64,000 nt of DNA, from sequence record NC_048170.1. The stretch is one strand, 5' to 3'. Both the position numbers and the translations under genes were made by a program. The number at the start of each line of letters is the position of its first letter. Position 1 is the first letter of the stretch. This document shows positions 5,766 through 23,449 of this stretch, in pieces. The notes beneath the pieces are model-generated. The model was not told where the DNA came from. It was given only the letters and a program-made list of their open reading frames with translations, and made no database searches.

Positions 5766-6971
5766 ATGTCTAATTACTACGACCAAGCTATTCAAACCAT
5801 TCAGGAGAATAATGCGTCGTTAACACCCGAAGCTGTGGAGGCAGCGGGCAATGCGGTGTTATTCACTGATTCGGATTGGGCAATAGCGCGGAAGAATATT
5901 CGTACCAGTGTCGGTCAAGGGACATACGAGGACAGTATCGCCAGACGGTATCGGAACGTGTCACCTATTCCAGGTAACAGCCCGATCCCGATTAACCGCG
6001 ATCATTCCGGTATTACCTTCTTTACACGACCTAATTTACATCTTACCGACGCGAACTTAAAACGAGATCGACGTTTGTGGTCGTTACGCACGGATAACCC
6101 TAACAGTATTCAGGCTGTTGTCCGCGACTACTTGGACCCTGTGGGTGCCAGAAAGCGGAACCATCGAGGACGTGCCATCGTCGATGAGCGCAATCCATTC
6201 ATAAGTATACTGACGGACAACCTGACGGATATCAGCGGTTTCAATGACATGGAAATGCAGGTCTATCAGGGTAAACCGGGATTACGCCAAGAAACCGTTG
6301 TGATGGCTGACGGTTCAGTGGATATGTTTCAACCCTATAACCTGAACGCGACGTTCAAGAACATCATGGGTAACCCCATCATGTTCCTTCATTATATTTG
6401 GTTGATTTACATCGCTGGTGTGCATAATGGCGAACTGACGCCAAGCCCTCAGGCCATCATTGATAATGAAATGGATTACTGGACAAGATGTTATCGTATC
6501 ATCTTGGATCCGACTGGGATGTATGTTCGTTATATCTTCGCGCCGACCGCGATGTTTCCGGTTGGGCTACCGATTGGTAATATGGCCAACTACAGCATCG
6601 ATAAACCCTTCACGCAAGATAACGAACGTATCACTATTCCATACCAAGCGGTTGGTAACAACGCATTTGATGAGATTCTGAAGGATGAATTCAATCGACT
6701 TGTCCTGATGTTCTATTACGGTGAGAACGATACCCGTACGTTCCTTGAAGATGAGGAGTTGGTACCTATCTCACCCTACGAGCGTCGAATCATGTCGTAT
6801 CGTGTCGATATGTATCCATTTATTCATCCGTTGACCTCAGAGCTTCTTTGGTTCGTACCCGCTGATGATTACAACGAATTCTATCTGGACCTTGAGCCGT
6901 CGGCGTTACCACCGGATACGTTCAGTCGCGATCTTGTCCGTACCACCATTCCGCAAAATTACGAGGGATAA
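5766..6971 (+). CDS. Putative virion structural protein (baseplate/tail-associated)
   Basis: Start moved to ATG 5766 after an AAAGGA RBS. Divergent two-gene unit with 6975..9968, an arrangement I recall as typical of phiKZ-like phages. Confidence 0.55.
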   Translation: MSNYYDQAIQTIQENNASLTPEAVEAAGNAVLFTDSDWAIARKNIRTSVGQGTYEDSIARRYRNVSPIPGNSPIPINRDHSGITFFTRPNLHLTDANLKRDRRLWSLRTDNPNSIQAVVRDYLDPVGARKRNHRGRAIVDERNPFISILTDNLTDISGFNDMEMQVYQGKPGLRQETVVMADGSVDMFQPYNLNATFKNIMGNPIMFLHYIWLIYIAGVHNGELTPSPQAIIDNEMDYWTRCYRIILDPTGMYVRYIFAPTAMFPVGLPIGNMANYSIDKPFTQDNERITIPYQAVGNNAFDEILKDEFNRLVLMFYYGENDTRTFLEDEELVPISPYERRIMSYRVDMYPFIHPLTSELLWFVPADDYNEFYLDLEPSALPPDTFSRDLVRTTIPQNYEG

Positions 6972-6974
6972 TAA

Positions 6975-9968
6975 ATGAGCGTAACCAACAAAGATCTTGC
7001 TGAACAGCTCAATCGCTATATGCTTTCACCTATTGAAATGCAGGCTGTTGCAAGCGATATGATCCGTTTGGCTTCTGATGGTGAATTAACCCTGGTTGAC
7101 CCCAGCTGTCCGTTTGTTTATCTGCTGGAGGTTGCAACGGCGACGGCGGCGAACCAGAACGCACGGGATGAATCCCGTGTTCGCGAACTGTATCCGAAGC
7201 TCGCAACGAACTGGAACCAGCTCTATCGTTGGATGTATGATGAGTCGTACGTTGGACGTTTCGCAATGCCGGGTAAAACGGAAATCATCTATTCGTTAGG
7301 GTATCAGGAAATCCTCGATCGCGCTGTAGAGATTCCCAACACCATCGCCTCCGATGATTTAAGCCGTTCTTACAGCCGTAAGTTAGTGATACCACGTACG
7401 ACGGCGTTTACGGTGGCTGGAATGGATTTCGGGTTGCATTATCCCATCGAAATCCAAGTACAAGCGCACGACCAGATCCGCGTCGTTTATAACACCGATA
7501 ACATCAGCCCATTGCAAACCTTGGAGAGTAACCAGGTTGAGTACGGGGTTGTTCGTGTAAAAGCGGGTAAAGTGTTGGTGATGCGTATTCCGCTGTTCCA
7601 GTTTAAAACACTGGTAAAAGATGTGCCGTTTAACAGCGTTCACGGGATGAACAGCAGCATTACCTTCGAAGATCAGTTTTACCATTGTCGTGCGTACATG
7701 TCGTCGGATAACGATACCTGGACGGAGATAGCGACAACACACAGTCAGCAGATCTACGATCCGTTAACACCAACCATCGCGTTACAAGTAGAAGGGAACA
7801 AACTTAACTGGCGTGTTCCTGAAATTTATTTGTCTCAAGGTACGATGGATAAAAGCACCATTCGACTTGAGGTGTTGACGACGAAAGGGAAAATCAGCGT
7901 CGACCCGTCTGATTACGACGTGACCGATTGGAAAGATAACTACATCGATTTGTCACCAAAAGCTGAACAGAAATACAGCGCGCCGCTAAGCGCATTCAAC
8001 ATTAAAGGGATTTATAGCGAAGGGGCATTGTCGGGTGGACGATCTGCATTAACGTTCGAGGAACAACGTGAACGTGTTATGGCGGGTGTGAACAAAACCA
8101 AGGTACCGATCACGGGAACGCAGGTAGAGCTGGTGCTTCAAGATGCGGGTTATGGGATGGTGACCACCATCGACAACGTAACCAATCGTTCGTTCCTGGC
8201 AACCCGAGATTTACCGCAATTGAGCGACAGCGTGCCGCAAGCCGGTTCGTTGATGGGGTCTTTCTATACGTCAGCTGCAGCATTGGTGAAAAGTAAGTTT
8301 GTCGCCGATAACGGCGATCGTATTACAATTAAACCTGACTGCCTGTATCGCGACAGTAACGGAAGTATCACGCTGTTGTCGGACGATGAAATTGACCGTA
8401 TTAATGCAGGCAACTCCGATGCGAAGTTGAACGCGGTAAACAACGCCATGTTGTTCTACAGTCCGTTTCATTACGTATTAGATGCAACAAGCGATTTCGA
8501 CATCCATGCTTATTACCTGGATGCCCCTAAGATCGGCACACAAGCATTCCTCGACGCGAACGAGACGATCCCGTTAACCGCTATGGTGACCGGATACCGT
8601 CTGGATCGTATCGCTGAAGGATATCGTCTAAGCCTCATTGTAGAAGGTAACGACGCATGGAAGGCGCTCGACGATAAAAACGTGCACATCCAGCTGGGAT
8701 TCAATCCGCGGGGTGAGGGTGATTATGCGACGATGCTGGCGTCACCGACAACCGATGAACAAGGTCGTCGTTTGTTCACCTTCGATATCACCACGAATTA
8801 CGATTTTACACGAATCCTGGCCGATGATTCCACGGCGTATGAACCGTATATCGCATTGACTTCGTTCTCGATGTATGAATCAACACCGCGGGATTATTGG
8901 GCATCACTGCAGCAGTATTTGGAAATCTTCCATGTGGTGACGGATTACGCGCCTGAAGATGTCGACGGTATCTTACACAGCGCTTCCGATAATTACCTGG
9001 TTAAGAAACTCACGCTTCAAAATGGGTATTGTTTCTACCGTGAACGTCTCACCGCAACCTTTGGTTATGATCTGGATGGTCTTTGGATGCGTTCTCGTAC
9101 GGTGGCCTCGGAGATCACGTATAAACGTTACACCGAGAACATTCCGTGGGTGTATGATGAAGATATCCCAGCGACGGATGAGACCGGTTCTGTTATCATT
9201 GAGCCGGGTGACGATGGTACGTTGTCGGTTAAATATCTGCATCGTAAAGGAGATCCGAAATTAAACAGTGATGGGAGCCAAGCCTATCGTTATCTGAAAG
9301 GCGACATCATGAAAGATAATTACGGTAATCCGATCCCCGTCGATGAACGTGAGGTTCTGCGTAACCTGGATATGTTCTTTATTGATGCATCGTATCTGTT
9401 AGCGAACGATACAGACGTGATTGAGTATCGTAATGCGATTCCTACGCAGCTTATCGAATGGATCCAGAACGATATCGACACGTTCAGGAATTTCTGTTAT
9501 GAAGAAACAGAGATTTCATTGTATCCTAAGCAATCGCTGGGGTATGTGGATGTTATTGTGGAAAACGGATTGGAAACGACGCTTCCTGCTGCCCTATCGT
9601 TCAACGTGACGCTGTACTTACCAGCTAAGCAATACGCTGACCTGGATTTACGTCAGGTCCTTCAAGCGATGGTATCGAAAGTCATCAATGAATGCTTAAC
9701 ATCCCGTACAGTGGCGAAAGCAGAAATGATCGCGATGATTCGTGAGGAGGGCGGTGACGACATCCTTAACGTTGAAATCGATGATTTTGGACCAGGTAAG
9801 AACCTCAGTGTTTATACCGCGAAGAACGATGGTGTTCGTTGTGCGGTGAAGAAAGAGCTTTATGTTAAAGCGGATGGTATCTTGTCCGTACGTGAAGCGA
9901 TCGATGTAAGTTTTGTGAAACATGCACAAAGCAACAGCACAGCGTTAGCGCAAGGCCTCCGTGTCTAA
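6975..9968 (+). CDS. Large virion structural protein, probable baseplate wedge component
   Basis: 997 aa. N-terminal DPSCPFVYLLE...LYPKLA and internal LSGGRSALTFEEQRERV resemble baseplate J/gp6-like signatures. Confidence 0.5.
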   Translation: MSVTNKDLAEQLNRYMLSPIEMQAVASDMIRLASDGELTLVDPSCPFVYLLEVATATAANQNARDESRVRELYPKLATNWNQLYRWMYDESYVGRFAMPGKTEIIYSLGYQEILDRAVEIPNTIASDDLSRSYSRKLVIPRTTAFTVAGMDFGLHYPIEIQVQAHDQIRVVYNTDNISPLQTLESNQVEYGVVRVKAGKVLVMRIPLFQFKTLVKDVPFNSVHGMNSSITFEDQFYHCRAYMSSDNDTWTEIATTHSQQIYDPLTPTIALQVEGNKLNWRVPEIYLSQGTMDKSTIRLEVLTTKGKISVDPSDYDVTDWKDNYIDLSPKAEQKYSAPLSAFNIKGIYSEGALSGGRSALTFEEQRERVMAGVNKTKVPITGTQVELVLQDAGYGMVTTIDNVTNRSFLATRDLPQLSDSVPQAGSLMGSFYTSAAALVKSKFVADNGDRITIKPDCLYRDSNGSITLLSDDEIDRINAGNSDAKLNAVNNAMLFYSPFHYVLDATSDFDIHAYYLDAPKIGTQAFLDANETIPLTAMVTGYRLDRIAEGYRLSLIVEGNDAWKALDDKNVHIQLGFNPRGEGDYATMLASPTTDEQGRRLFTFDITTNYDFTRILADDSTAYEPYIALTSFSMYESTPRDYWASLQQYLEIFHVVTDYAPEDVDGILHSASDNYLVKKLTLQNGYCFYRERLTATFGYDLDGLWMRSRTVASEITYKRYTENIPWVYDEDIPATDETGSVIIEPGDDGTLSVKYLHRKGDPKLNSDGSQAYRYLKGDIMKDNYGNPIPVDEREVLRNLDMFFIDASYLLANDTDVIEYRNAIPTQLIEWIQNDIDTFRNFCYEETEISLYPKQSLGYVDVIVENGLETTLPAALSFNVTLYLPAKQYADLDLRQVLQAMVSKVINECLTSRTVAKAEMIAMIREEGGDDILNVEIDDFGPGKNLSVYTAKNDGVRCAVKKELYVKADGILSVREAIDVSFVKHAQSNSTALAQGLRV

Positions 9969-17689: not shown

Positions 17690-19186
17690 ATGAGCGAACA
17701 AGAACGAAAACCTAAGAAGAAACTGCTCGGTATTCAATGTCGACACATCAGCTATAACGAAGCGAACGATGGCAGCAAGAACGACCTCATGATCGCAAAA
17801 GAGATCATGTTCTTTGATGATAATACGCAAGCGACGAACCTTCGCTTCTTTGAGAATTACAAACGTCCGTTTTGGGTGACAGTAGAGAGTAAACGTAAGA
17901 ACAAATATAAAAAGGAAAGCGAGAAGCTGTCACATGTGCGACGCTACGATGTCCGTCAAAGTGAACTGGTTGAAAAGATCAGTTCGGTGCTTTATAAAAG
18001 ACGTGCCGATGATAACACCCGTTTACAGCAGCTTGCACGGAGTCCATACCTCTATGGAACGGACGTTAGCGCCAGCTGTTATTTAAAAACCCAATACAAT
18101 ACAAAATGGCCGGAATACGTCGATAAATTACCCGCTTCTATCGCCTGTTTCGATATCGAAACTGACGTTGTCCATGGACACGGTAAGATCGTCTGTATGT
18201 CTATTACAATGGGATACAATGCGATACTTTGCTATACCAAGGACTTCGTTGGTCATATTCCGAATGCGATTGAGAAAACTCATGAGAAGATTCGATATTA
18301 TCTGGCCGAACGTCTGAATACCAAAGAAGATCCTCACGCGTTCGAAAAATATCATTACGATGTGCGAATCGTAGAAAGTCCGGCACAAGCGGTCATCCAA
18401 TGCATGCAAAAGGTTCACGAATGGCAGCCGGATTATCTCCTCGGCTGGAATATCGCGTTCGATATTCCGCGCATGCTCCAGGCACTGAACGAGGAAGGGT
18501 ATCGTCCCGAGGATGTTTTCTCCGATCCTCGTGTACCACCTAAATATCGTATTGCTCGCTGGGTACCACCGAAGACCGACAAGGTATCTGCTTCAGGTCG
18601 TAAAACCAACCTTACCCTCGAGCAGACCTGGCCGATGTTTTATACGATGGCTACGTATCAGGTTATGGATGCGATGTGTGGCTATAAGTTCGTTCGTTTA
18701 GGAAGACCGGATGAAGGACGCTATTCACTCGATGCGGTATTAGAGCGAAATAAATGCCATACGAAATTAAAAGCGATTCCTGGTACAGAAGGGTTCACGG
18801 AGCTTGCGTGGCACGAAGAAATGCAAACGAACCATCAAATCGACTACGGCGTATATAACCTTTGGGATAACCAAGGCATCGAGGCGTTGGACCAGAAAAC
18901 AAAAGACTATTCGATGACCATCCCTATCCGTTTAGCGGCGTCGGATTTGAAAGATTTCAGTTCTAACCCTAAACGTATCTGCGATAAACTTTTCTTCGTT
19001 TATCTTAACCGTGGGGAAGTCATGGGATGCACCGCCGACGACATGACCCAGGAAGAAGATAAGTGGGTTATCTCACGAACCGGACATATCGTCACATTAC
19101 CATGCGATCTCATGGCGGACAACGGCATTCATCTCTTCTGGGATATGCCTAATTTAAGGAGCTATATTCGATTATTTGTTGCGGAT
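17690..19186 (+). CDS. Family-B DNA polymerase N-terminal subunit (3'-5' exonuclease part), exon 1
   Basis: ExoI CFDIETD, ExoII GWNIAFD, ExoIII YNLWD. Ends ...RLFVAD at the intron 5' splice site (U19186). Confidence 0.85.
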
Positions 19187-20948
19187 TAACCTTCGTTCTG
19201 TAAAAGTTTACTTCATGTAAGAATCGTGTGCGGCATAAGAGAGGCCGATACATCTAGATGTTACATGAGGTTTACGAGATGGAAAAATCTATACATACTC
19301 AAACTGGAACTATTGACTATCGCGATTCAGCATATTTGCCGTACACAAATCATCGTTATCGTATATTTGAAGATGGCGAGTTGTACGACTATAAAGAAGA
19401 TAGGGTCGTCCCTTACGAAGTTGTAGACGGTGTCCCTTATGTTGAAATCGATTGGTATAGAGGCATTGGAAAATACGATCTCGGTATGATCATTCTCACC
19501 GTTCTTGAACGGGTTGCTTTACCAGATCACCTTTACGATGAAATTGAATCGTTGTTTGTGGACGGAGATCCGACTAACTTTTCGTATAGCAATCACATCT
19601 ACCGTTTCCGTAATGGGCCGTTAGAAGTTGAGGGATTCGAAGGTTATTGTTATATTCCGTTTGCATCTCGTTACGCGATAAATAAAGAAGGACATTGTAT
19701 TAGTCTTCTTTCGTTGGATCCTATCACGTGGACGAAAACGGTTCAGCAAGGCACACGTCTTGGCGGATACGCTTATCGTAAAGTGGTTCCCGACAGCGGG
19801 TTTACACCGCAGTTATATCGTCACCGAGCTATCATGTTAGCGTTTACGAGATATGATGCTAACGTTGTGAACTTAACTGTAAATCATAAAAACGGAATTA
19901 AAGGTGACGATTGGTTTGACAACCTCGAATGGGCGACATATGCCGAGAACAATCAACATGCTCGTATGGCAGGGTTGTGTATAGGTACGTCAAAACCTGT
20001 TTTGGTTTATGATTACCGTGCACGAATCGAACGTCGTTTTAATAGTATCGCAGAAGCGGAACGTGCTTATCCGTACGTGCCGAAAGGACGTTTCAAATGG
20101 TGGGTAAACAATCCTCCGAAACGTATCCCAGAATGCGATTTATACATCAAGTTTGCCACGGACAATACGCCTTGGCCGGAGTGGAAACTTGGAGAAGATC
20201 GTCGTGTCGAGGACACCGACGGTCGCGGTATTCTCGCTATTAATAAAGAGACGAACGAACGACATGTGTTTCCATCAGTAACTGCTGCCGCAAATGCGTT
20301 AGGAATCTCCTGGATTACCGTAAGACGTCATTGCGATCGTCGTGCAGTACCTACGAAACAGCCTTGGTGTTTTCGTTACGCTGATGATATCGCTGCCATG
20401 CCTGATTTCGATGTTAATAAATTAGTTCCTAAGAAGAAGCGTGTATTTAATGTCCCATTAGAACGATAACAGGTCCCCCTACTTGTAATGAGTGGGTGAA
20501 CTCTCTTTAATTGCTGGAAACCTTTAATGCCCCTCCACACCACAACGCAATCCGAAAGGGTAAACGTGATGGTTGTCGAAAGACAGAAAAAAGTTGGAGG
20601 GGATTACCTATGTTGCAATAAAAGCCACCGCTTTCTTGGATAACGAAAGATGACGGTGGTACTAAGGGTAGAAGATAGAAATAAGGTAACCGTAGCAGCG
20701 AAGACCCTACGGACTGTCGTGACCGACTCGATGAGTTGGCGTGGTTAACACGGACAGGCTACGGGTAACGTTCAACGACCATCCGGTTGCGCGGAGTAGG
20801 AGAATTAGGATGTTCTCTGAAAAGGGAGAAGTCGGTCGAGGTGTTGTAGAAACACCATTCGGTTTGCTAACGCAAACCTAAGGCAGGCTAAGATATGGTC
20901 TATTTTTCGTTGTGTTCATGTATAGAAATTACTGAACCATCGTAAGAG
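19187..20948 (+). mobile_element. Group I intron (IA-like) with homing endonuclease in the P1 loop
   Basis: P AATTGCTGGAAA 20509-20520; Q GTAGCAGCGAAG about 20692-20703; R GTTCAACGACCA about 20770-20781; S AAGATATGGTCT about 20892-20903. P7 GACCA/TGGTC; P3 CTCTCTTT/AAAGGGAG. Exon ends in U and intron ends in G. Removal restores AD|LDISSSYP. Confidence 0.92.
19258..20469 (+). CDS. Intron-encoded HNH homing endonuclease with NUMOD-type DNA-binding repeats
   Basis: VNHKNGIKGDDWFDNLEWATYAENNQHA (HNH_3-like) and C-terminal HVFPSVTAAANALGIS (NUMOD1-like). True start may be ATG 19279 (GAGG RBS). Confidence 0.88.
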   Translation: MLHEVYEMEKSIHTQTGTIDYRDSAYLPYTNHRYRIFEDGELYDYKEDRVVPYEVVDGVPYVEIDWYRGIGKYDLGMIILTVLERVALPDHLYDEIESLFVDGDPTNFSYSNHIYRFRNGPLEVEGFEGYCYIPFASRYAINKEGHCISLLSLDPITWTKTVQQGTRLGGYAYRKVVPDSGFTPQLYRHRAIMLAFTRYDANVVNLTVNHKNGIKGDDWFDNLEWATYAENNQHARMAGLCIGTSKPVLVYDYRARIERRFNSIAEAERAYPYVPKGRFKWWVNNPPKRIPECDLYIKFATDNTPWPEWKLGEDRRVEDTDGRGILAINKETNERHVFPSVTAAANALGISWITVRRHCDRRAVPTKQPWCFRYADDIAAMPDFDVNKLVPKKKRVFNVPLER

Positions 20949-21203
20949 CTCGATATATCTTCAAGCTATCCAAATGGGCAGATACTGCTCAATCTATCCA
21001 GAGCATGTGTTTTTCGTGAGCTCTCACGCATTGAGGGCGTCTCTGACTATCAATTCAGGAAGCTAGGTATCAACTTTATCACTGGAGGTAAAACGAACGC
21101 TGTAGACTTCTGTAGAATCGTTTATAAAGCGCCATCGATGTTTGAACTTTTAGAACATTTCGATGCGACGCGTCCAAAAGAGGAAGCGCGGACCATCGAA
21201 TGA
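20949..21203 (+). CDS. DNA polymerase exon 2 (84 aa, carries motif A)
   Basis: Manual translation LDISSSYPNGQILLNLSRACVFRELSRIEG...RTIE*. Spliced product is 583 aa. Absent from the ORF track. Confidence 0.88.
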   Translation, partial: LDISSSYPNGQILLNLSRACVFRELSRIEGVSDYQFRKLGINFITGGKTNAVDFCRIVYKAPSMFELLEHFDATRPKEEARTIE

Positions 21204-21240
21204 ATCAAGTATGTTGATCCTCGTTTAACAAAAAGAAAAC

Positions 21241-21294
21241 GCATGCGAAGCCCCTCCCCCTGGCGGAAGCCGGAGGGAGGGGTGAGGTTTATGC
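21241..21294. terminator. GC-rich hairpin between convergent genes
   Basis: CCCCTCCCCC-TGGC-GGAA-GCCG-GAGGGAGGGG followed by TTTATGC. Confidence 0.65.
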
Positions 21295-21774
21295 GCGTTC
21301 GTTGCCAACCGTTACTTTGTAGTCAGCGTCGGTTAAGAAAATAGACAGGAATCCATGTTCTTTGCAAATCTTACTAAGGATGTCAGCAATGATTTCGTTG
21401 ATCATCGGCTTGTTTGCAAGGGCATAGATGTACCCGGGTGTAAAAGAAAGTGCGTGATTGATCATAGGCTCATGAGAAGCCAAGATAAGGATCACGTGAT
21501 GCTTCCCATCGTCGGTAACGACCGCTTGCGTAGACACGAAGAAATCAGTGAAGCAGCAGCGATCACAGGCTTTAGGTATATACAAGTCACCCAGAGCTTC
21601 GTCACGTGCTTTTACGTGTGTTTCAGGGGTAATGCTGCTAAGTTGATCTTCAGCGAGATCCAAGACATCCTCAATCGTTTTAAGAATAGCGTTGCGGAAA
21701 TCCTCACGGTAGAATGGGATGATATCACGATCGTTCATGTAATCGCCGGATTCGATAGTAAAGTTGATGTTCAT
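21289..21774 (-). CDS. Hypothetical protein
   Basis: 161 aa, AGGAG RBS. Confidence 0.6.
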   Translation of the reverse strand: MNINFTIESGDYMNDRDIIPFYREDFRNAILKTIEDVLDLAEDQLSSITPETHVKARDEALGDLYIPKACDRCCFTDFFVSTQAVVTDDGKHHVILILASHEPMINHALSFTPGYIYALANKPMINEIIADILSKICKEHGFLSIFLTDADYKVTVGNERA

Positions 21775-21884
21775 TGAATGCTCCTAGTGGTTATGTCGAT
21801 TGATTGATGTGTTAATTTATGTTTGATGGGGTATACTTGAAACTACAAATAAGGCTCTTGGCGTTGCTGTTATGGTTCAGTTCT

Positions 21885-22361
21885 TTATCCCTTGTTGGAT
21901 TCGTCAATATACTTGGTGTCGTAAGACAAATGCTGAATTAATTTTCTAGGTCTGATGAAAATACGACATGTGATAAACACATCGGGATCGTATTGTTCCA
22001 CGCAACGTCCGAAGGCTCGTTTTGCGGACTGACGCATCAAGGCTAATTCCTGATCGTTCATCTCATCATCAAATTCGATGAGTATTGTTATTTTATCGGG
22101 AAATAAATAGATAGAGTAATCGCTACCGATATCACCGTCGTCAAAACGATAATCGTTGTGGTAATGGCGGAGCTTACCTTCGTGCTCCGCCTGGTACCAC
22201 CCGACGATACTATCAAGGCCCATACCCAGGCGTCCGAATGCCTGATTAATAATATCATCAACGACGGATGCAGGTGTGGGGCCATTGAATAATCTATCCA
22301 GACATTTTTTCATCGATTTGGTTTTCACGTTCATTGTTTCTTTTCCTGTTATAGTCAACAT
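21885..22361 (-). CDS. Hypothetical protein
   Basis: About 150 aa; part of a tandem array of similarly sized genes. Confidence 0.6.
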   Translation of the reverse strand: MLTITGKETMNVKTKSMKKCLDRLFNGPTPASVVDDIINQAFGRLGMGLDSIVGWYQAEHEGKLRHYHNDYRFDDGDIGSDYSIYLFPDKITILIEFDDEMNDQELALMRQSAKRAFGRCVEQYDPDVFITCRIFIRPRKLIQHLSYDTKYIDESNKG

Positions 22362-22423
22362 ATAGCCCTTCCCCGGCCTTGACGGCTAGGGAAGGGGCTA
22401 GGTACGTTATTTATGCTTCATTA

Positions 22424-22909
22424 TCAACCAGAGATGTTGCACGTTTCTTCTTCGTCGAGTGCGTACTCCATTGTGTAGAATTCATAACCATCGGAAAACT
22501 TGAGTGTTACTGTAATAGGGAAATCGCACGGCATAGCTGATTTCTTAAATGCGTTATTAGCAACATCAGCCAACCGACGTATAGCATCAGTCCCGCTGAC
22601 ACTGAATGGTAGTTGTATGTTGATAAGGATGCGGTGCTTGTAAACATAGAAAACAACGGTGCTGTCAAGATAAACGCTATGGAACGGTATTGTTGGGATG
22701 CGTTCCACGATGGTAAAATACGTCCCATCAATATCACTATTTCCCACTGACCACTTATCGGATTTGCGTAGATTTTCTTTGAGGAATTCGACGCTTCGAG
22801 TGACAGCCTCAGTAGTAGGTGCGACGTATGCGTCTTTATGCGTGTCGAAAAGTTCGTTGACGTTAGATTTGAATGAATACGCTGTTGCCATTTTGATAAC
22901 ACCGGTCAT
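22424..22909 (-). CDS. Hypothetical protein
   Basis: About 155-161 aa; weak C-terminal similarity to 22952..23449. Confidence 0.6.
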   Translation of the reverse strand: MTGVIKMATAYSFKSNVNELFDTHKDAYVAPTTEAVTRSVEFLKENLRKSDKWSVGNSDIDGTYFTIVERIPTIPFHSVYLDSTVVFYVYKHRILINIQLPFSVSGTDAIRRLADVANNAFKKSAMPCDFPITVTLKFSDGYEFYTMEYALDEEETCNISG

Positions 22910-22951
22910 GTTTAATTGATGAGTATTCCATCTAGTAAGGGAATACGTTAT

Positions 22952-23449
22952 TTAGCTATCGATCTCGCCATCTTCAGGATGGTAGTGGAATTCGAATAGC
23001 CCTGAACCATCGTGCCCGCTGATTGTTAATGTAACAGGCATATCGAATCCTCGTACGCGTTTATGAAAACACTCCGCTAACTTACGTTCAGCGTAATCTA
23101 CTATTTCATCGGTTGCTTCGACGCCACCTGTTACGCTGAGCGTGATATCGATACTAATGATGTTATCATGCAACGCAAACCGCCAACGATCGATACGATT
23201 ATTATCTTCAGCAGGCGTCTCGTTTACAAGATAGATTTTATCGTCAGCTGACAAAGCGGGACTCCAGCAACGTTCGTTTATTAATTTCGCCTGGAGTTTT
23301 AGTATCGTCTGATCAATAATATCCCAACACGTAACCAGCGTGACGTCAGGCACTGAATTGAGAAGGGCGAGCACTTTATCCTTTATTTTAAGTGCTTCCG
23401 CAGGACGCCCGCAAATACCATGCATTTCAACTTTCTTATCCATATTCAC
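22952..23449 (-). CDS. Hypothetical protein
   Basis: 165 aa; weak similarity to 22424..22909. Confidence 0.6.
   Translation of the reverse strand: MNMDKKVEMHGICGRPAEALKIKDKVLALLNSVPDVTLVTCWDIIDQTILKLQAKLINERCWSPALSADDKIYLVNETPAEDNNRIDRWRFALHDNIISIDITLSVTGGVEATDEIVDYAERKLAECFHKRVRGFDMPVTLTISGHDGSGLFEFHYHPEDGEIDS

Follow-up and report, generated by a model that had tools for sequence, protein, structure and literature searches.

The gene for the N-terminal half of the split DNA polymerase (DNAP-N) of Escherichia phage vB_EcoM_Goslar is interrupted by an intron of 1762 nucleotides (nt), which is removed precisely in infected cells, joining position 19186 to position 20949 and giving a protein of 583 amino acids (aa). 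The gene occupies positions 17690-21203 of the window, by which is meant the whole 64,000-nt stretch of sequence record NC_048170.1 that was analysed, read on one strand from 5' to 3'. A window coordinate equals the Goslar record coordinate minus 62000, and window 17690-21203, that is record 79690-83203, is 100 % identical to the record. It is very probable that the insertion is a mobile, IA2-like group I intron that carries the gene gp069 in an extended loop of its P1 helix, is precisely removed, and would splice by autocatalysis and spread by homing.

The intron is already on record in a bioRxiv preprint of October 2026, in whose Methods the same gp068 exon coordinates were inferred independently for protein expression (10.64898/2026.10.01.755736), and in kind it is a classical phage element, matching the DNA polymerase introns of SPO1 and SP82. 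What is added here is the splice joint in public RNA, the P1-loop architecture with its covariation, a census of the insertion hot spot, and three allelic states of the locus.

Exon structure and the spliced transcript

The interrupted gene is made up of the following parts, all on the + strand.

17690-19186, +: exon 1 of DNAP-N (gp068), 499 codons, ending in ...RLFVAD (GAT); from the list of open reading frames (ORFs), the GenBank/RefSeq annotation, tblastn and the RNA contig
19187-20948, +: group I intron, 1762 nt, with UAA at its start and G20948 (omega-G) at its end; from the RNA joint, the intron-less allele and RF00028
19183-19200, +: 5' strand of P1 (GGAU plus the first intron U, 19183-87), an internal loop, and the 5' strand of the P1 extension (19193-200); from duplex folding and covariation
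19279-20469, +: gp069, an HNH/NUMOD1 homing-endonuclease-like protein of 396 aa, in the P1 loop; from Pfam, a match to I-HmuI, and homologues
20459-20476, +: 3' strand of the P1 extension (20459-66), an internal loop, and the internal guide sequence GGUCC (20472-76); from folding and covariation
20477-20948, +: ribozyme core; from the Rfam alignment, domain folds and a MAFFT alignment
20949-21203, +: exon 2 of DNAP-N, 84 codons and a stop, with no GenBank annotation; from translation, tblastn, the intron-less allele and the RNA contig

As an earlier reading of the DNA made from the letters alone (the sequence-only reading) had described, the ORF of gp068 ends in FVAD with TAA adjoining its last codon (GAT then TAA, 19186/19187), a gap of 1762 nt follows that ends in G (20948), and the frame reopens at 20949 with LDISSSYPNGQ..., running for 84 aa to a stop at 21201-21203. 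The same reading had placed the insertion within motif A of the polymerase, which holds insofar as the intron lies in the motif A region, but the motif itself, DxxSxYP (here D-I-S-S-S-Y-P), is not split and stands whole in exon 2, with the intron two codons upstream of the aspartate. Both GenBank and RefSeq give gp068 as the 499-aa ORF, which RefSeq names "DNA polymerase"; they place gp069, a NUMOD1/HNH_3 protein, at 19279-20469, and window 20470-21288 is without any annotated feature, including under the exon 2 match.

Assembled contigs from public RNA-seq data, comprising four runs (X1-X4) of one sample from one study, were compared with the window over 18700-21400. The joint from 19186 to 20949 is present in the contigs of three of the four runs (X1, X3 and X4), where it is scored as "skips 1762, ends TA..AG" and "both = 0", and the contig that holds it spans 30+30 nt of flank with zero differences from Goslar and no positional ambiguity, at a depth of 103-176. 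Beside it an unspliced path runs from 19157 to 20978, and the flanking contigs end and begin exactly at 19186 and 20949, the pattern that two RNA forms leave in an assembly graph. An intron-less allele, found at the locus L003 described below, is ruled out as the source of the joint because it shows 27 differences from Goslar in the 50 nt to either side of the site (10 of 50 upstream and 17 of 50 downstream). The sequence-only reading had staked its case on a spliced junction being found in infected-cell RNA; the junction is there at 19186/20949, and the prediction is upheld.

Searched separately by tblastn, exon 1 matched about 290 jumbo-phage records, the alignment ending exactly at its last codon, and exon 2 matched 283 such records as a direct continuation of exon 1. 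In kmuB, an intron-less phiKZ-like phage, the two matches lie at 78155-79828 and 79829-80038, and in 9Ps-7B at 229629-227956 and 227955-227746, in both cases adjacent to the nucleotide. A word-based protein search further retrieved, from a metagenomic contig of 237 kb, a protein (P0001) whose 583 aa correspond to 499+84 and are 99 % identical to the Goslar DNAP-N; its locus, L003, is without exactly the 1762 nt, and the protein is the same as that of Goslar across ...FVAD and LDISSSYP.... It is thereby confirmed that exon 1, annotated as gp068, and the unannotated exon 2 are one 583-aa DNAP-N gene split by the intron.

That the polymerase is encoded by two genes, as the sequence-only reading had assumed, is borne out by motif C (DTDS), which annotation and a motif search place in gp244 (record 174314-176467), about 91 kb away, and by the preprint, which shows that gp068 (DNAP-N) and gp244 (DNAP-C), with Rhc, form one polymerase that is needed for replication (10.64898/2026.10.01.755736). 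DNAP-N is the subunit with the exonuclease domain and motif A of this family-B-like enzyme; the exonuclease-side profile PF03104 matches it weakly (16.1 bits, below the cut-off of 23), and PF00136 has no match in the Goslar genome. Sixty-two intron-less loci conserve the D-I-S-S-S-Y-P of exon 2, and because the motif A aspartate is encoded in exon 2 only, it is a sound inference that splicing is essential: it would be required for a catalytically competent polymerase.

Ribozyme core and the extended P1 helix

The architecture of the intron was worked out in comparison with others at the same position, taken from loci on metagenome contigs encoding DNAP-N homologues and from a scan of IMG/VR. 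Ten introns sit exactly at the Goslar site (exon 1 ending in ..xD, with GAU before UAA or similar), with lengths of 297, 380, 430, 1536, 1718, 1762, 1772, 1775, 1778 and 2434 nt, and all of them end in G. Nearly all start with UAAC or UAAA, and in Goslar 19187-19189 are the stop of the shortened exon 1 ORF; since the first three intron bases form a stop codon, gene callers give clean ORFs of about 480-500 aa.

With an E-value threshold, the group I model RF00028 matches the Goslar intron at 20405-20923 over the full model (1-253), with 44.7 bits and E 1.2e-9. Among the same-site introns, scores reach 90.1 (L045), 70.4 (L012), 64.3 (L010), 59.8 (L008) and 57.1 bits (L068), all five above the gathering score of 50, and L011 also matches. 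Together with the intron-less allele and the spliced RNA joint, the Rfam match supports a group I intron with the boundaries that the sequence-only reading had proposed. The helices of the core, all on the + strand, were assigned from the Rfam alignment and domain folds, save for P7.1 and P7.2, which come from the domain folds.

20478-84:20490-96, +: P2
20502-08:20823-29, +: P3
20512-17:20690-97, +: P4
20521-24:20683-86, +: P5, with a 157-nt extension
20698-20770, +: P6
20777-81:20896-900, +: P7, GACCA/UGGUC, also from compensatory changes in ten introns
20782-85:20792-95, +: P7.1
20799-804:20813-18, +: P7.2
20830-89, +: P8, branched
20914-18:20933-37, +: P9

A MAFFT alignment of nine cores brought out conserved blocks at J3/4-P4, P4'-P6, J6/7-P7 and J8/7-P7'; it misplaces the P8-P9 region of Goslar, and the pair tables were computed by script instead. 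The unusual P7 of Goslar (GACCA/TGGTC at 20777-81 and 20896-900), which had been read from the letters as a compensatory pair, is one of several versions found across the ten same-site introns, in which the five pairs are always kept: GACUA/UAGUC in six, GACCA/UGGUC in Goslar, GGCCA/UGGUC in two and GAAUA/UAUUC in one. The 3' end of the intron is G20948, the omega-G, immediately before exon 2, and U19186 is the 5' splice-site U. Between P7 and P3' two hairpins are found, P7.1 (20782-95) and P7.2 (20799-818), and equivalent inserts of 66-114 nt are present in all same-site relatives. Hairpins in this place mark the phage IA2 type (Michel and Westhof 1990; the Twort structure), and the Goslar intron is on that ground called IA2-like.

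The 5' splice site is proposed to be held by a P1 helix whose strands lie far apart. The guide GGTCC (20472-76) pairs with GGAT plus T (19183-87), U19186 standing opposite G20473 as a U.G wobble, and beyond an internal loop of 5x5 nt the helix continues in an extension of TCGTTCTG (19193-200) with TAGAACGA (20459-66), given in a second listing as UCGUUCUG with UAGAACGA at the same coordinates; the duplex has -14.8 kcal/mol. The guide GUCC thus lies 1.29 kb downstream of the 5' exon end GGAU and directly 5' of P2, and an (A/U)G-GUC motif stands immediately 5' of P2 in 10 of the 10 same-site introns. The guide tracks exon positions -4 to -6, the pairs being GGAU/GUCC in Goslar, GGGAU/GUCCC in L071, GGUGAU/GUCACC in L008 and GCUGAU/GUCAGC in L045; in two same-site introns (L010 and L031) the guide pairing is just 3 bp. 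For the extension, cognate 5' and 3' segments have a mean of -13.6 kcal/mol against -7.75 (standard deviation 1.1) for permuted partners, and none of 20000 permutations reaches the observed value. Both parts of the pairing that the sequence-only reading had put forward, the guide with its U-G pair and the helix of 19193-200 with 20459-66, are in this way supported by sequence, duplex folding and covariation in same-site introns.

Its further claim that the HNH gene is looped out of P1 is likewise supported by the comparison of the ten same-site introns, the ORF lying between the two strands of the helix. ORF-less members have P1 in the corresponding place, either as a plain hairpin with a 10-nt loop (in the minimal L068) or in extended form (L010 and L055), and in ORF-bearing members the ORF is flanked by strands that differ from intron to intron yet pair with each other (over 13 bp in L012, 10 bp in L011 and 9 bp in L031, among others); it is for these two reasons that gp069 is placed in the P1 loop. 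In seven of the ten, P1 encloses the ORF and the 3' end of the ORF extends into the guide, P2 or P3, in several relatives passing through the guide to reach P2 or P3; in Goslar, the final codons and the stop of gp069 share sequence with the 3' strand of the P1 extension.

Endonuclease gene, allelic states and competing explanations

Apart from the annotated start, gp069 has an upstream in-frame ATG at 19258, which would give 403 aa, and GAGG is found at 19267-70. C-terminal to the nuclease part, NUMOD1 (PF07453) is matched with 29.6 bits, above the cut-off of 22.8. Relatives of gp069 are phiKZ gp179 (29 % identity), an unannotated stretch of PhiPA3, and the HNH protein of Pseudomonas phage HPP-Temi (31.5 %); the HNH protein of the L012 intron, 41 % identical to gp069, passes the HNH_3 threshold with 32.7 bits.

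Among Goslar-like phages, the locus exists in three states: intron-less (L003), with the present intron (the window and L013), and with a different intron of 1536 nt at the same site (L012:5998-7533, IMG/VR UViG_3300045988_173921), which shares only core blocks with that of Goslar even though the exon 1 protein of L012 is 99 % identical to Goslar's. The exons of Goslar and L003 diverge by about 3.5 % overall, but the 10 upstream and 17 downstream differences mentioned above give the 50 nt on either side of the site a density 5 to 10 times higher; in exon 2 all of them are synonymous, with zero amino-acid changes. The U.G pair of P1 and one of its G-C pairs arise from two differences on the upstream side, GAC to GAU and GCA to GCG. 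The upstream exon flank of L012 is identical to that of Goslar and its downstream flank partly resembles the intron-less allele; the two intron-bearing alleles have the upstream flank in common and differ in the downstream one. Such a pattern would be expected from recent homing with co-conversion, to which it points indirectly, and it parallels SPO1 and SP82. It is plausible, as the sequence-only reading had supposed, that gp069 targets intron-less alleles, which would fit both the polymorphism of the locus and the concentration of synonymous differences near the site.

In the model preferred here, the intron RNA would be autocatalytic, with guanosine attacking at U19186 and G20948 serving as omega-G, and gp069 would nick or cut the intron-less DNAP-N alleles of co-infecting Goslar-like phages, leading to homing and to co-conversion of flanking exon sequence. 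Several observations weigh against this model and have to be set beside it. An Rfam scan of the whole window at gathering thresholds gave no match, and the 44.7 bits of the intron stay under the curated gathering score of RF00028 (50 bits), so that the search with group I models which the sequence-only reading had called for succeeds by full-model coverage and E-value and falls short by score. P10 amounts to only 2 bp. An unbiased whole-intron duplex scan for the partner of the 5' splice site was noisy and did not put the proposed P1 partner first for Goslar, although it did so for L010, L012 and L071; it was replaced by the comparison of cognate with permuted partners, and since the energy scan does not single out the Goslar partner, the P1 assignment rests on comparative position and covariation. 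The RNA evidence consists of assembled contigs from a single sample and study, which speak for the presence of the spliced form and not for its efficiency, and the unspliced path may represent DNA, pre-mRNA or free intron. As for gp069, its HNH_3 match (PF13392) stays just below the cut-off (23.3 against 24.8 bits, E 5e-5), and in a search of PDB sequences the match to I-HmuI (1U3E) is weak (E 0.54), even though the His and Asn residues of the HNH motif are aligned.

The last two points bear on the possibility that the intron splices but is no longer mobile, gp069 being an inactive or repurposed remnant and the differences in the flanks ordinary divergence. The sub-threshold HNH_3 score would agree with this, as would the report that a PhiPA3 homologue is kept out of the nucleus of a rival phage (PMC12908238). 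However, the gp069 ORF is full length, its HNH-motif His and Asn residues align with those of I-HmuI, exons that are nearly identical (about 97 % at the nucleotide level) have the intron present, absent or replaced, and the differences crowd around the site while leaving the protein encoded by exon 2 unchanged, which together make the loss of mobility unlikely.

A second alternative accepts the removal of the intron in vivo and denies its autocatalytic nature, ascribing the removal to a phage or host protein (maturase-like or a chaperone) or to another RNA-processing route. In its favor are the low RF00028 score, the very weak P10, a P1 that must form over 1.29 kb, and a 3' domain that is short (48 nt after P7') and lacks the conserved P9 block of the relatives. 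Against it, the elements of the core are all present and covarying, including P3-P8, P7 with consensus J6/7 and J8/7, the U.G pair at the 5' splice site and the omega-G. To our knowledge, the phage IA2 introns so far studied (T4 td, SPO1 and Twort) self-splice, which also counts against this alternative, and it is regarded as quite improbable. Finally, the notion that there is no splicing, the two parts being separate or decayed genes and the joint an assembly artefact or an intron-less contaminant, can appeal to the lone 499-aa ORF in GenBank and to the 60-nt length of the graph contig, but it is effectively refuted by the independent recovery of the joint in three runs at high depth with both flanks identical to Goslar, by the many flank differences of the known intron-less allele, by the direct continuation of exon 1 into exon 2 in 283 phage records, and by the same gene model having been arrived at by the authors of the preprint.

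The motif A hot spot and relation to known introns

The preferred reading, that of a mobile self-splicing intron, can be placed in the wider distribution of such elements. Many metagenomic DNAP-N homologues stop at motif A, and 17 of the 79 DNAP-N loci in IMG/VR, about a fifth, are interrupted. RF00028 follows directly after the break in 10 of the 11 interrupted IMG/VR loci that were scanned with Rfam, most of them above threshold, and L071 is the one of these 11 with no RF00028 match. At least three insertion points fall within 16 nt of the motif A region: the Goslar site, one at +6 nt (L006, L078 and L097) and one at +16 nt (L004). Judged by these sequences, the motif A region of DNAP-N is a group I intron hot spot across uncultivated chimalliviruses.

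Some individual loci show further arrangements. The intron of L004 lies inside the Tyr codon of SxYP and is ORF-less, and a free-standing HNH_3 gene is found on the opposite strand just past exon 2 (6081-7043). A second hot spot of DNAP-N lies about 40-45 codons upstream (L056, L085, L088 and L090), where the ORFs stop after a conserved ..W(I/M).., and L056 has two group I introns in one gene, at 5855-6206 and 6360-6693 (91.8 and 86.7 bits). The 2434-nt same-site intron of L011 (L011:5465-7898) has a second ORF (224 aa, with no Pfam match) downstream of the HNH gene and two P4-like motifs, and it may be nested or composite.

Downstream of the Goslar gene, between the end of exon 2 (+) and the convergent gp070 (-), there is an unannotated G+C-rich inverted repeat, CCCCTCCC ... 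GGGAGGGG, at window 21246-21290, which resembles a bidirectional terminator. The small minus-strand ORFs that follow (21289-23449) show no similarity to one another, and tandem paralogy among them was rejected.

The closest parallels are the Bacillus phage introns of SPO1, SP82 and phi-e (with I-HmuI and I-HmuII) and of Bastille (with I-BasI), in which a group I intron likewise interrupts an essential DNA polymerase gene in a conserved stretch and encodes an HNH endonuclease with NUMOD-type DNA-binding modules. As in the SPO1/SP82 type, close relatives bear same-site introns with strongly diverged ORFs (here Goslar and L012, at 41 %), and the flanking exon is replaced. The Bacillus phage polymerase introns of this type are cited in both PMC11620839 and PMC12908238. 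The Goslar element differs in its host gene, which encodes the N-terminal half of a split polymerase that is family-B-like and highly diverged, and in its phage, a nucleus-forming jumbo phage that infects a Gram-negative bacterium. Its ORF occupies the P1 loop and runs into the 3' strand of P1; moreover, nicking and marker exclusion have been shown for I-HmuI, whereas the endonuclease activity of gp069 is predicted.

Within the Chimalliviridae, similar HNH-bearing introns in essential polymerase genes are represented by the elements of PhiPA3 gp210 and of phiKZ gp179 and gp72, and a 32-nt block of the Goslar intron (J6/7-P7-P7.1) is 94 % identical by blastn to the phiKZ 072.1 region. PhiPA3 gp210 is carried by a putative group I intron that interrupts the gene for an RNA polymerase beta subunit near the catalytic residues, and a competitive ("weapon") role has been shown for it (Birkholz et al. 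2024, PMC11620839). In Goslar, the target is the DNA polymerase, not the RNA polymerase, and a weapon role of gp069 is conjecture. Goslar itself has two other group I introns (loci L094 and L095), both in RNA polymerase beta genes, at record 211817-212245 (-) and 169269-169645 (-), which match RF00028 with 67.7 and 46.9 bits and, unlike the DNAP-N intron, are annotated in GenBank as ncRNA. The former has the same order of exon, HNH gene (the ORF179-like gp206), ribozyme core and exon, whereas in the latter the HNH gene gp186 is located 3' of the core. The cultured chimallivirus HPP-Temi (PP968062.1) has the order DNAP-N exon 1, HNH gene, gap and "DNA polymerase" fragment, but its exon 1 ends in ...HVADLD, with the insertion 6 nt downstream of that in Goslar.

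With the IA2 introns of T4 (td, nrdB and nrdD) and Twort, the Goslar intron shares P7.1 and P7.2 between P7 and P3', and it is 74 % identical by blastn over P3-P5 to introns of Twort-like Staphylococcus phages. The T4 introns carry their ORFs in P6a or P9.1; compared with the T4 and Twort introns, that of Goslar has its ORF in P1, a large P5 extension and a short P9 region.

A more far-reaching proposal, which is possible though rather doubtful, is that chimallivirus introns routinely have their endonuclease gene in P1, an arrangement tolerated since transcription and splicing in the ribosome-free phage nucleus would spare the ribozyme from being unfolded by translation. In that case the nuclease would be made only from exported unspliced transcripts or the free intron, and Goslar-like phages would use gp069 and the protein of L012, 41 % identical to it, as weapons against one another at the DNA polymerase locus, as PhiPA3 does with gp210.

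For group I introns as a class, the DNAP-N intron of Goslar leaves existing knowledge unchanged, and its consequences are closer to the phage. The gp068 of GenBank and RefSeq is a truncated product that is missing the motif A aspartate, and the two-exon model is needed for cloning, modelling and knockdown of the Goslar DNA polymerase. Near-identical Goslar-like phages in which the intron is absent, present or replaced provide an E. coli-based system for the study of intron-endonuclease competition and of splicing in the phage nucleus.

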